The position numbers were made by a program, and so were the translations under genes. The notes beneath the pieces were generated by a model. The model had not been told where the DNA came from. It did not search any database and saw only the letters and a list, made by a program, of their open reading frames with translations. Shown here one piece after another: positions 3,398 through 44,170 of a DNA stretch of 64,000 nt. How positions within the stretch are numbered: the first letter of the stretch is position 1; each line of letters starts with the position of its first letter. Where the stretch lies: the sequence record OQ031493.1. The stretch is one strand, 5' to 3'.

Positions 3398-3895
3398 TTA
3401 TTTTTGTTTTTGACTGATCATGGAGGCATTGGTGAAGTAATATAACGCATGTTTCCAATCTTGAGGGTCATATGTGCACTTATGAGCAACCACATAATCA
3501 CCATCAATTTTTTTGAACAAGTTTACCATGATCACCTCATCCATATCAGTCCCGTTATGCACAGTTTGATAATTCAGTCTCACCAACATGTCATCTACAT
3601 TGGTTTTCAACTGGAGACCATCTTTGAAGAAATCACGAACACCATCCATGATTTGTTCATTGCGAGACAGGATGTTTTCAGAGATCTGTTCGAACATACC
3701 CCTTGCACCGATCAAACGTAATTGATCGTAATTGGGTTCACCCATGCAGATGGCCTCATCATCACGATTACACATCTTCTCCAGCAGAACGATAGGGTTA
3801 TAATCCCAAGCAACCCCACCAGTTACAACAGAGGTCAAATAGCCATAGAGACTGAGTTCACTGTCACGCTCATTTGCAGGAATCATGCGGTTCAT
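3398..3895 (-). CDS. hypothetical protein (about 165 aa)
   Basis: Start moved to MNRMIP (GAGGA SD); ORF track begins at 3937. Confidence 0.7.
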   Translation of the reverse strand: MNRMIPANERDSELSLYGYLTSVVTGGVAWDYNPIVLLEKMCNRDDEAICMGEPNYDQLRLIGARGMFEQISENILSRNEQIMDGVRDFFKDGLQLKTNVDDMLVRLNYQTVHNGTDMDEVIMVNLFKKIDGDYVVAHKCTYDPQDWKHALYYFTNASMISQKQK

Positions 3896-3930
3896 AATTA
3901 ACGATCCTCGTATTGGTGTTGCAGCATAGC

Positions 3931-4314
3931 TCAGCAAGTCTCTTGAGCTTTCTCAAAACTAGCCATCGAGCGGGTGCGCGCACGCTGTAGAATAGACAAG
4001 CCGTATTTTTTGAACTTCTTCTTGTGGATGAAACCAAGGCGTTCGTAGATGAAGTCTTTACGGTCGGCGCGAGGTTTACCATCAGCTACGATACCACGGT
4101 CGAAAAGAGCCCAGAACAGAGCGCTTTCATCATGCAGGTAGTTGGCCATTTCCTGAGGCCACTGAACTGCGCATAGAGCAACGATTTGTTCAAGTAAACC
4201 ACTATCTGAGATGGCATAGTACTCACGACCCTGAACATAGTTCATTTTGTCGAAGTTGCACATAGCCAGTCTGCCAGTACCCTGGTTGATTTTCTTTTGA
4301 ATGTGTTCGTTCAT
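3931..4314 (-). CDS. hypothetical protein (127 aa), GC-elevated
   Basis: ORF with AATAGGT leader; about 48% GC by hand count. Confidence 0.7.
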   Translation of the reverse strand: MNEHIQKKINQGTGRLAMCNFDKMNYVQGREYYAISDSGLLEQIVALCAVQWPQEMANYLHDESALFWALFDRGIVADGKPRADRKDFIYERLGFIHKKKFKKYGLSILQRARTRSMASFEKAQETC

Positions 4315-4349
4315 GGTTTGACCTATTTTCAGATTTGGATTAATTATAG

Positions 4350-4601
4350 CTAGACGAAGGTATTGCGTTCGAATTGGATGGAATTACGTTCAACAATATC
4401 GTTGAGGTATTTATCATTGTCGATAAATTCCCCAGTGAGCATGTTACGCAGAACCCAGTTCCCCCGAAGTGGTATACCGCTGTTAGGGTTGATCCCGTAT
4501 TCACGCATCAAAATCCGACGATTGTGGTCAACACCTGGCTCCATGTAAGATTCACTGATAAAACATTCCACCATGTTGATAACTTCTTTAGATTCGCTCA
4601 T
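4350..4601 (-). CDS. hypothetical protein, paralog of 3081..3356
   Basis: REYGINPNSGIPLRGNWVLRNMLTGEFID; AAGGAA SD. Confidence 0.75.
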   Translation of the reverse strand: MSESKEVINMVECFISESYMEPGVDHNRRILMREYGINPNSGIPLRGNWVLRNMLTGEFIDNDKYLNDIVERNSIQFERNTFV

Positions 4602-41551: not shown

Positions 41552-42046
41552 ATGTCAAATAAAGCTAAAGAACCAACTCTAACTAAAGAACAGGAAAAGA
41601 CTCTACGTCTATTTGAACGTGCAGTTGGAGCATCAGCTGCCGCAGCTGATCATATTCTTAACCGTGATGGTTGGGATGTTGTCAATGTACTAGCAGGTTC
41701 CGTAGGTAAACGTATTCTACAAACTGAAGTATTCATTAATCCAGTTATCAATAAGATCAATGAAATCATTCCGACGTTATCTGATCCTACTGGATTCCAA
41801 AAGAACCTACAAACAGTTATTGCTGACCTTAATCGACTAACTAAAATTATCAGTGTCCTATATGCACAACATCAAGGTAAGGCTGGTCCAGCAAATAATG
41901 AAGATGAACTAAAACTCATCAGTGAACTTGTTACTAAATACACTGGTATTGAAGGTGCTATTGAACGCGGTATTGATGGTGTAATCCTAGCGATGATCGG
42001 CACTCTTCGAGAAGCTGGTTGGGACGAAAAACTAATTCAACAATAA
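41552..42046 (+). CDS. conserved protein (gp78 position)
   Basis: 164 aa; GGAG SD. Confidence 0.65.
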   Translation: MSNKAKEPTLTKEQEKTLRLFERAVGASAAAADHILNRDGWDVVNVLAGSVGKRILQTEVFINPVINKINEIIPTLSDPTGFQKNLQTVIADLNRLTKIISVLYAQHQGKAGPANNEDELKLISELVTKYTGIEGAIERGIDGVILAMIGTLREAGWDEKLIQQ

Positions 42047-42057
42047 TGGAGTTTTAA

Positions 42058-43659
42058 ATGGCTACTGCTGACTTCGATAATGAGTACGATGATACTCCAG
42101 AAGAGAATCTACTAGATCAAATTGATGAGATCAATGCGCAACACGATCCTGACTCTAGTATTGAAAATAATGACGAGGTGGAAACTCCACCTTTCGTTCC
42201 TGATCAAAAAGAAATTAAACTACGTATTCCACGTAATGCTAAAACTGGAAATATTCGGGATGCTTCTGAACCGGCTATTAAAGACAGTGCTAGCATTCTT
42301 ACTTTGCTACGTGAGAACCCCCAGACTGTTTATGATTTCCTGGATCACAATAAAGAACTATTTAAAGCATTTGCTGATAATAAAGTAGATGACACTAGTG
42401 ATGGTGTAAAGTGGACAGCTGCTATTCTGGAGGGCTTAGCTCACTCTATTGTTGAAGATGCACCAATCGGTGCAACTGCCCGAGAAGGCTCTGAATGGTC
42501 TAGTGAAATTCCTTATGGTGAAAAGATCATTCGACCTGGACGACCTGTATTTAATACCAGTGGTCGTAAAATGACCGATGATGAAACTCTAGTTTTCCTA
42601 ACACGTAAAGCTAACATCGGTACGCCATATGATACTTTCCTACCTCATTCAGGTATTTGGGTAAAACTACGTGCACCTACTGGTACTGAAGTAGCTGCCC
42701 TACAAGCACGTCTAGCACAATTAAAGATCCGGCTAGGCGCTGAATCAAAAGGTATGCTGTTCTCAAACATGGCAGCTGTGTTACTTAACATGGTTAGTAG
42801 TTTAGCACTTGCATGTGTTATTCAATCCAACTATAAGTTCAACACCCCAACTGATCTAGAGCATGTTATCTCAGTAGCTGATGAGCCGTTCTTGCATCAC
42901 GCACTAGCGGCGACTATGTATCCAGATGGATTTAATTATAGTTATCCATGCATTGCAGATGCCAATACATGTAACCATATTGAAACAGCGAAACTTAATA
43001 TGTCAACGCTTGTTCAATATGATCTACTGGCATTCTCAGAAGAACAAAAGAAATATATTGCACGTAAGTTTAATGCATGTACTGAATCTGATCTTAAGAC
43101 TTATAAAGAAGGATTCCGTATTGAAACTCAAGTAACTGAAATGTTTGGTGACGTTGGTGTTGTTCTTGAGATGTGTACAATTGCTGATCGCCGAGAGTCT
43201 GGTGATAGTTGGATTAACTCAATTATCGATATGACTCAAGGTAGTTTTAATGAACCAGTCGATGGTCCGCAACGTTCTCAGTATATTGCACGTTTACAAA
43301 AGATCTCTATTGCCCGTCAGTTCTCACATTTTGTTAAAGAAATTAAAGTACGTGAAGATGACGATGGTGAAAGTTCTGAAGACAATATTCGTACTGCAAC
43401 CACTAATCGTGAAACTATTGAAAAGTTCTTAACTAATATTCTATCCACACCGGAATATAATGACCGCTTTATTAATGCGGTGAGTAACTTCATTGATTCA
43501 CAACTAATTGGAATGATTGCAATTACAAGTTGGAATTGTCCAGTATGTGAGTCACCTGCCGCTACTAAATTTAAAGAACGTTTCCCACACTTAATCCCTA
43601 TTGACATGCTGTCAACTTTTTTTACTTTGGCGGCCTCGAAGTCAAACCGGATGGTGTAG
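42058..43659 (+). CDS. gp77-like protein, candidate tail/baseplate assembly chaperone
   Basis: 533 aa; C-terminal WNCPVCE Cys pair followed by STFF at a T7 slippery run. Confidence 0.7.
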   Translation: MATADFDNEYDDTPEENLLDQIDEINAQHDPDSSIENNDEVETPPFVPDQKEIKLRIPRNAKTGNIRDASEPAIKDSASILTLLRENPQTVYDFLDHNKELFKAFADNKVDDTSDGVKWTAAILEGLAHSIVEDAPIGATAREGSEWSSEIPYGEKIIRPGRPVFNTSGRKMTDDETLVFLTRKANIGTPYDTFLPHSGIWVKLRAPTGTEVAALQARLAQLKIRLGAESKGMLFSNMAAVLLNMVSSLALACVIQSNYKFNTPTDLEHVISVADEPFLHHALAATMYPDGFNYSYPCIADANTCNHIETAKLNMSTLVQYDLLAFSEEQKKYIARKFNACTESDLKTYKEGFRIETQVTEMFGDVGVVLEMCTIADRRESGDSWINSIIDMTQGSFNEPVDGPQRSQYIARLQKISIARQFSHFVKEIKVREDDDGESSEDNIRTATTNRETIEKFLTNILSTPEYNDRFINAVSNFIDSQLIGMIAITSWNCPVCESPAATKFKERFPHLIPIDMLSTFFTLAASKSNRMV

Positions 43660-44120
43660 TTAATGATCTGAGATATAGTCGTCTTGAGGCCACTTTCAAG
43701 GAAGATAGTGGTCACATCCTACATCCAAACTTTGGTTATGATAAGTTAACTGAAGATGATACACACTTAGATAGACTATTATCGACAGTAGGGGCAGTAA
43801 GACCGTCTACAGCAGCACGTTTAACAAGAGAAGCATATCTACTTGATTACGATATCGGTTCACCAGAAAACGGACCCATGTGGTTAAATAAGGTAAATCC
43901 TAAAGAGGACTTTATCGAAGGTGGGTTGAGAAGGAGACTGACTAGAGATTTCTTCAAGTATAAAGTAGGTAGCTTATCTAATATGTCATTAACTGAATTC
44001 TTTGAATTAGCTTATTCTGAGGTAGAATACATAATTGAATTATGTAGAAATATTACCCATAATGAAGCTGTTAATAACAATAACCAGTTAAATGAATTAA
44101 ACAAGCCGTTAACTAAATAA
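43623..44120 (+). CDS. -1 frame extension of the gp77-like gene (GT-like); ORF track shows only 43878..44120
   Basis: Frame open from 43605 to the TAA at 44118 with no ATG/GTG/TTG before 43878. Confidence 0.65.
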   Translation, partial: YFGGLEVKPDGVVNDLRYSRLEATFKEDSGHILHPNFGYDKLTEDDTHLDRLLSTVGAVRPSTAARLTREAYLLDYDIGSPENGPMWLNKVNPKEDFIEGGLRRRLTRDFFKYKVGSLSNMSLTEFFELAYSEVEYIIELCRNITHNEAVNNNNQLNELNKPLTK

Positions 44121-44138
44121 AAAAAAAATAAAGACAGG

Positions 44139-44170
44139 CCCCTCTCCATGTGGAGAGGGGTTTATGTCGC
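44139..44170. terminator. bidirectional terminator
   Basis: CCCCTCTCCA/TGGAGAGGGG plus TTTATGTCGC; A-run on the other side. Confidence 0.8.

Follow-up and report, generated by a model that had tools for sequence, protein, structure and literature searches.

The locus considered here raises the question of how the reading frame that lies open behind the gp77-like gene of phiKZ-type phages is translated, given that it runs for 91 codons with neither a stop nor a start codon. We examined it in a window of 64,000 nucleotides (nt), i.e., the whole stretch of DNA that was analyzed, from record OQ031493.1, which originates from a phiKZ-type Pseudomonas phage. The region of interest (positions 42058-44120) is 100% identical to vB_PA32_GUMS and 98.6% identical to phiKZ. 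The zero frame of the gp77-like gene closes at 43659, and the next annotated open reading frame (ORF) begins at 43878. The following elements are involved.

42058..43659, plus strand: gp77-like gene with a zero-frame product of 533 amino acids (aa), matching phrog_4585 (E-value 8.5e-196)
43617..43623, plus strand: putative slippery run U UUU UUU, zero-frame codons ACT TTT TTT
43623..43659, plus strand: predicted dual-coding overlap of the zero-frame tail (11 codons and stop) with the first 12 codons of the extension
43623..44120, plus strand: -1-frame extension of 165 codons and a stop (coding piece 43623-44117, stop 44118-44120)
43660..43877, plus strand: start-less coding stretch, without ATG, GTG or TTG and without a stop
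43878..44120, plus strand: annotated ORF of 80 aa from the ORF list, homolog of PHIKZ076.4

In all likelihood, gp77 is linked to the following ORF by a programmed -1 ribosomal frameshift at the U run, and the locus would then yield two products of 533 and 687 aa. Most ribosomes would probably read through the run and produce the 533-residue protein, while a fraction would slip back by one nucleotide with two Phe-tRNAs on U UUU UUU (43617-43623) and read 165 more codons up to the stop at 44118-44120, giving the 687-residue protein. The long form would share its first 522 residues with the short form and exceed it by 154 residues, with a conserved, largely helical extension domain in place of the 11-residue helical tail of the short form. 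In the frameshift reading, the annotated 80-aa ORF is only the tail of the extension. Both products are presumably functional.

The initial annotation of this DNA, made from the letters and a list of ORFs, had proposed such a slip, and its description of the junction is confirmed. Towards the end of the gp77-like gene, the T7 run reads ACT TTT TTT ACT, a phase that fits a tandem -1 slip, and it is followed by 11 sense codons and the gp77 stop. An open -1 frame extends from 43605 to 44120 (171 codons), and its first ATG, GTG or TTG codon is found at 43878, after the 91 start-less codons and 85 codons 3' of the run. The piece after the run counts 165 codons and the sum 522 + 165 = 687 is correct as well. 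In current phiKZ-type annotations the stretch 43660..43877 is intergenic, and the ATG at 43878 has no Shine-Dalgarno-like 4-mer ahead of it. Extension residues 26-163 match phrog_12109. A T7 run by itself is unremarkable here, with 22 matches in the window versus 34.7 expected from shuffles. Since such runs are not unusual in the window, the significance of this one follows from the comparison with relatives alone.

For this comparison we used 32 non-redundant relatives, comprising 31 loci tabulated together and one metagenome contig (L042; 53% identical to gp77). Their hosts belong to Pseudomonas, Ralstonia, Erwinia, Serratia, Salmonella, Klebsiella, Vibrio and Cronobacter, and some are uncultivated. 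The junction was read in the Pseudomonas phages PhiPA3, PA1C, 201phi2-1, Phabio, Psa21, Noxifer, Viktualia, RVTF4, and D6, in Ralstonia phages RSF1 and RP12, Erwinia phages pEa_SNUABM_54, AH06, and Wellington, Serratia phage PCH45, Salmonella phage SPN3US, Klebsiella phage KpLz-2_45, Cronobacter phage CR5, Vibrio phages pir03, BONAISHI, and sm033, and in IMG/VR contigs. All 32 relatives carry a run of five to eight T on the same Phe-Phe pair (Phe-Leu once), located 8-44 codons ahead of the gp77-like stop. In all 32, too, the -1 frame opens a few codons before the run and stays open for 152-176 codons after it, so the conservation of the slippery run and of the start-less -1 frame, which the initial annotation had proposed to look for in an alignment of the junction, is indeed found. 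The extensions have 17 distinct lengths, which means that every insertion or deletion kept the -1 frame. The gene annotated next is in the -1 frame in every case, and the +1 frame closes after a median of about 5 codons. We rejected chance openness of the -1 frame, since the frame is kept across relatives. The full heptamer U UUU UUN is present in phase in all 12 relatives outside the Pseudomonas clade. In PA1C, Noxifer, PhiPA3, Phabio, Psa21, D6, and others the run is just T5 with a C behind it, or T6.

A tblastn search with the 165-aa piece of the -1 frame alone retrieved 21 more distant Pseudomonas phages with less than 60% identity (32-41% among those listed). In most of the distant phages listed, including ones with 35-40% identity, the alignment begins at extension residue 1, i.e., directly past the run, and its start lies under the end of the upstream gene. 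The extension forms a conserved domain in 25 aligned relatives. Phage RVTF4 (L011) has one extra frame break inside the extension, with the annotated downstream ORF in another frame, which could reflect a sequencing error or decay in that one genome.

The codons of the run point to selection at the nucleotide level. Its first Phe codon is TTT in 25 out of 25 loci and its second is TTT in 21, TTC in three and TTG in one of them, while TTT makes up 10-65% of the Phe codons elsewhere in the same genes (2 out of 21 in PhiPA3). The product of the expectations for this TTT conservation is 5.5e-14, a value to be read with the caveat that the loci are not fully independent. By this measure, the run is conserved as nucleotides, beyond what the amino acids demand.

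A change of constraint is visible at the same place. We calculated the entropy for each zero-frame codon position in 15 sequences of the Pseudomonas clade. Over the 13 codons before the run, positions 1/2/3 have entropies of 0.81/0.28/1.56, as in ordinary single-frame coding, and over the seven codons after the run the values are 0.41/0.81/0.84. The zero frame has an invariant third and a freely varying second position at codons +4 and +5, a pattern that indicates constraint in the -1 frame. Judged from this alignment, the frame under selection becomes the -1 frame no more than four codons from the run. Further downstream, in the interval from the gp77 stop to the first codon that could serve as a start, close pairs differ mostly at the third position of the -1 frame, with 56/47/156 differences (327 codons in total), and the loci L030 and L032 differ at 12/6/40 positions in 83 codons of the start-less stretch. 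These patterns indicate that the start-less stretch evolves as coding sequence and that the extension is under purifying selection. Conservation, codon use, the switch of frame, and the lack of a Shine-Dalgarno-like motif at the downstream starts of 21 relatives (see below) together give strong support to the fusion of gp77 with the next ORF by a -1 slip.

Stimulatory elements are common at -1 frameshift sites, although they are not obligatory. The initial annotation had pointed to one candidate downstream of the run.

43632..43691 (43632-43637 and 43686-43691), plus strand: proposed stem GGCCTC/GAGGCC

Both hexamers are present and complementary. As a stimulator the stem is not supported, as the pairing does not occur in the minimum-energy structure, shuffled sequences fold just as well as the 100 nt that follow the run (z = -0.06), and the stem is not conserved. 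RNAalifold detected no shared structure downstream of the run in 15 relatives. When the 60 nt after the run were ranked by folding energy against other windows of the same gene, they did not stand out from these, the median percentile being 0.42 (31 loci). The run would thus act without a strong downstream RNA structure.

The missing stimulator also bears on the question of where the slip takes place. That it is ribosomal rather than transcriptional is what we infer from the sequence. Alternatively, the phage RNA polymerase might stutter on the T run and add one U in some of the transcripts, from which the long protein would then be translated. We consider this unlikely. These phages do transcribe with their own multisubunit polymerases, the genes of which lie nearby, the run is a homopolymer of seven to eight in most lineages, and sequence alone does not separate this route from the ribosomal one. 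Several lineages, however, have runs of only T5 plus C or T6, and runs of five to six T are short for polymerase stuttering. Moreover, the run is always in phase for tRNA re-pairing, a phase that transcriptional slippage would not need.

Initiation signals speak to the alternative of two separate genes. Across the relatives, the first ATG, GTG or TTG of the downstream frame lies anywhere from extension residue 9 to residue 102, inside the conserved domain, and a Shine-Dalgarno-like 4-mer is found at this first downstream start in none of 21 annotated relatives versus 16 out of 21 gp77-like starts. Nearly every genome of the family has its own annotated start for the downstream ORF, and the locus is under-annotated throughout. 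In phiKZ it starts at an ATG 85 codons into the extension, and in 201phi2-1 (2489-2950 of locus L006) and Wellington (2367-2810 of locus L036) the annotated start is a TTG that overlaps or lies near the upstream stop.

A downstream domain encoded by a gene of its own would have to start from a non-canonical codon, or be translated by ribosomes that re-initiate once past the gp77 stop, and phiKZ would perhaps make only the 80-aa ORF from 43878. Database annotations do list separate ORFs, the TTG codons of 201phi2-1 and Wellington are suitably placed, and non-canonical starts are compatible with the sequence. We nevertheless regard independent translation as very improbable. The conserved -1-frame residues begin directly after the run, 5' of the gp77 stop, and the constraint changes frame at that point. 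The first canonical start wanders within the domain, the downstream starts lack the Shine-Dalgarno-like motif, and the relative frame is always -1 and was kept by every insertion or deletion, while the synonymous-site conservation of the run is left unexplained by independent initiation.

A fused gene was searched for at both ends. None of 20 gp77 homologs found among 5.8 billion proteins is an in-frame fusion, all of them having a length between 485 and 633 aa. A profile of the extension retrieved 838 representatives (clustered at 50% identity) at E <= 0.001, 190 of them at E <= 1e-10; no in-frame fusion occurs in the best 150 of the 838, all with a length of 76-171 aa, and the starts chosen by the gene callers lie at varying depth into the domain in these 150. 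It is therefore the broken frame that has been conserved, which is what one would expect were the ratio of the two products to matter. A separate search with the extension sequence returned P0021, a ‘hypothetical protein, partial [Klebsiella pneumoniae]’ of 96 aa encoded on a contig of 288 nt. With 90% identity to the extension of phiKZ-type phages, it probably stems from phage DNA that ended up in a bacterial assembly.

We also verified the length of the junction with an 81-nt query against 47 phiKZ-type genome records from many laboratories. The query aligns to exactly 81 nt in all 47, hence with the same run length, and both protein pieces are 99-100% identical in the phiKZ-type records. 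Sequencing error, by which the initial annotation thought a single fused ORF might have been broken in the homopolymer, was rejected on these grounds. A miscall that split one gene, or a pseudogene remnant past gp77, is hardly credible: homopolymers are error-prone in sequencing and RVTF4 has its further break in the extension, but the junction length is identical in 47 independent assemblies, the break is kept in 32 diverged lineages, the gp77 homologs and the best 150 extension representatives include no in-frame fusion, and the extension is under purifying selection.

Returning to the programmed ribosomal frameshift, several points weigh against it. Some members of the Pseudomonas clade have T6 with a preceding A or G, or T5 with a C behind it (N UUU UUY), so that the P-site tRNA would re-pair imperfectly. 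Neither a conserved stimulatory RNA structure nor an upstream Shine-Dalgarno-like stimulator was found around the run. The zero-frame tail is partly conserved as well (F-F-x-L-x-x-x-K), which makes the overlap dual-coding, and conservation of the overlap alone therefore picks no frame. The search for fusions of the extension domain covered the best 150 of 838 matches. Finally, the trans-frame product itself is one that we infer.

The surroundings of the frameshift site comprise two further features.

41552..42046, plus strand: gp78-like gene (164 aa), matching phrog_14050 (E-value 9e-75) and corresponding to PHIKZ078
44139..44160, no strand assigned: GC-rich hairpin with U-rich flanks on both strands, terminator-like on both strands

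Both the gp78-like and the gp77-like gene start with an ATG preceded by GGAG. In the annotated relatives the gp78-like gene is found directly 5' of the gp77-like gene; it is its conserved upstream partner and forms one transcription unit with it. The hairpin starts 19 nt past the extension stop and is followed by convergent genes. It is preceded by an A9 run, followed by a T-rich tail, and located between the convergent genes (44120-44165). It is likely a two-way terminator that closes the unit of gp78, gp77, and the extension. Other neighbors of gp77 are gp79/80 (head, virion RNA polymerase), small ORFs, a RAD2/SF2 helicase, and the non-virion RNA polymerase; the same neighborhood is present in phiKZ, PhiPA3, PA1C, 201phi2-1, Phabio, and others. 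In Vibrio phages pir03, BONAISHI, and sm033 (L035, L038, and L040), the gene after the extension is on the opposite strand and encodes a ClpP-like protease subunit, at the place where the Pseudomonas phages have small ORFs and the helicase.

Under the name cg18, gp77 is listed as a core gene of the chimalliviruses, the nucleus-forming jumbo phages that encode chimallin, and annotated as ‘hypothetical protein’ (supplement of PMC10299810). Its homolog in phage Churi was detected by proteomics in early infection (PMC11849849). The phiKZ virion atlas makes no mention of gp77, nor does the Goslar virion paper mention the Goslar homolog gp81. gp77 is a non-virion protein detected early in infection.

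The gp77 body and the extension were searched, aligned, and modelled as two separate pieces. For neither piece did the sequence searches in Pfam and the PDB give a match, and those in PHROG gave only families without annotated function. The gp77 model is only moderately confident, with a predicted local distance difference test (pLDDT) score of 75 and a predicted template modelling (pTM) score of 0.78; its residues 517-532 form a terminal helix containing the Phe-Phe of the run. A fold search of the PDB with this model gave no match with an E-value below 1. In BFVD the first matches are chimallivirus homologs, followed by other proteins of uncultivated myoviruses and then by models of T4-like hub assembly proteins. 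The extension model is confident only in its C-terminal 65 residues, which are helical, and its matches in BFVD are limited to uncharacterized chimallivirus homologs. Four cysteines (gp77 residues 298, 305, 494, and 497) are invariant in 19 homologs, the last two forming a CPxC motif. They may constitute a zinc site that joins distant parts of the chain.

Our literature search, the coverage of which was incomplete, brought up no publication on a frameshift in these phages or on the trans-frame protein, and an earlier report is possible. The papers’ mentions of ‘gp77’ refer to the numbering of other phages. Read as a frameshift site, the junction is a classical -1 recoding site in a new, widely conserved gene family. 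If this is true, every genome of the family is mis-annotated at the gp77 locus, with an arbitrary start for the downstream ORF and, in some genomes, with about 70-100 codons left intergenic, and a conserved domain of 160 residues has been overlooked as part of a core protein. Tagging, knock-down, and structure studies of cg18 would have to reckon with two products. The site would also offer a natural example of slipping on a U run with no obvious help from an RNA stimulator and, to our knowledge, would rank among the most deeply conserved phage recoding sites outside tail-chaperone genes.

Three known systems can be compared with the gp77 locus. The tail assembly chaperone pairs of the lambda G/GT and P2 E/E' type resemble it in having a slippery run a few codons before the stop of a phage gene, a start-less -1 extension of about 150-165 residues, and two products with a common N-terminal body. 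Some members of these pairs also need no strong RNA stimulator. In contrast to them, gp77 is not located between the tail tube and tape-measure genes, and its upstream product is 533 aa long versus about 140 aa. Pfam, PHROG, and the PDB yield no chaperone match for either piece, chaperone-named entries appear in BFVD only at E-values of 4.9-6.4, and the Churi homolog of gp77 is detected early in infection. The initial annotation had proposed that the pair follows the pattern of these G/GT tail chaperones, an assignment that fails on each of these counts; we reject membership since synteny, size, and family searches are all against it. A -1 shift near the 3' end that gives two products is a likeness in expression to G/GT and no evidence of membership.

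The second system is dnaX of Escherichia coli, which encodes tau and gamma by a -1 slip on a homopolymeric heptamer and likewise gives two proteins that share their N-terminal part in a set ratio. There, a shifted ribosome meets a stop almost immediately, which makes the frameshift product the shorter of the pair, and strong stimulators are known on the flanks of the slip site. In gp77, on the contrary, the shift would lengthen the product, and the search for a stimulator was negative. gp77 has no sequence relationship to dnaX.

The third comparison, with gp51 and gp26 of T4, had also been suggested in the initial annotation, and it leads to a hint at the level of fold that sequence profiles did not confirm. 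A Foldseek search of BFVD with the gp77 model found T4-like models named ‘baseplate hub assembly protein’ at E-values of 1.2e-3 to 3.5e-2 and a probability of 0.97-1.0, with target-normalized template modelling scores of 0.39-0.57. A CPxC knuckle is present in both, and both are non-virion or assembly-type proteins. With hhalign, the gp77 alignment matched a seven-member alignment of gp51 and gp26 with 22.7% probability over 23 columns around the CPxC, which is below significance, and the single T4 gp51 and gp26 sequences reached 2.6-4.2%. The C-terminal helices of the extension gave a non-significant match to the gp51 C-terminus, which is collinear with the CPxC match at a similar spacing. 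Unlike gp77, T4 gp51 and gp26 define the hub assembly family PF12322/phrog_150 and match PF12322 with E-values of 4e-52 and 9e-64, respectively; gp77 and 18 homologs have no match to PF12322 even at E-values up to 10, and phrog_150 gives no match to gp77. The gp77 protein is also twice as long and its gene is not located beside hub genes. T4 gene 26 has two nested products as well, the second of which arises from an in-frame internal start and not from a frameshift. This nested product, 26', consists of the last 95 residues encoded by gene 26 (3803-4429 of locus L041, minus strand). The likeness in fold between the modelled gp77 and T4 gp51/gp26 is thus weak and unconfirmed.

Some database labels concern the same proteins. 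The gp77 homologs of Erwinia phage AH06 (1045-2688 of locus L015) and in BFVD entry A0A8S5P0M5 are labelled ‘baseplate protein’, and the gp51 homolog of Acinetobacter phage Konradin (31-786 of locus L043) is labelled ‘tape measure protein assembly chaperone’. Such naming agrees with the weak link in fold, although it consists of annotations and not of tests. The fold matches in BFVD, the CPxC match, the collinear match of the extension, and the absence of gp77 from the virion papers lead us to a tentative and rather doubtful proposal, namely that the frameshift pair might be the missing assembly-chaperone system of the chimalliviruses. The gp77 body and its extension would together be distantly related to gp51/gp26 of T4, the assembly factors for hub and tape measure, though larger than these, and the fixed ratio of short to long form set by the slip would serve stoichiometry in the way that G/GT does in lambda-like tails. 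If so, frameshift-controlled tail assembly would extend to a family in which it has never been seen.

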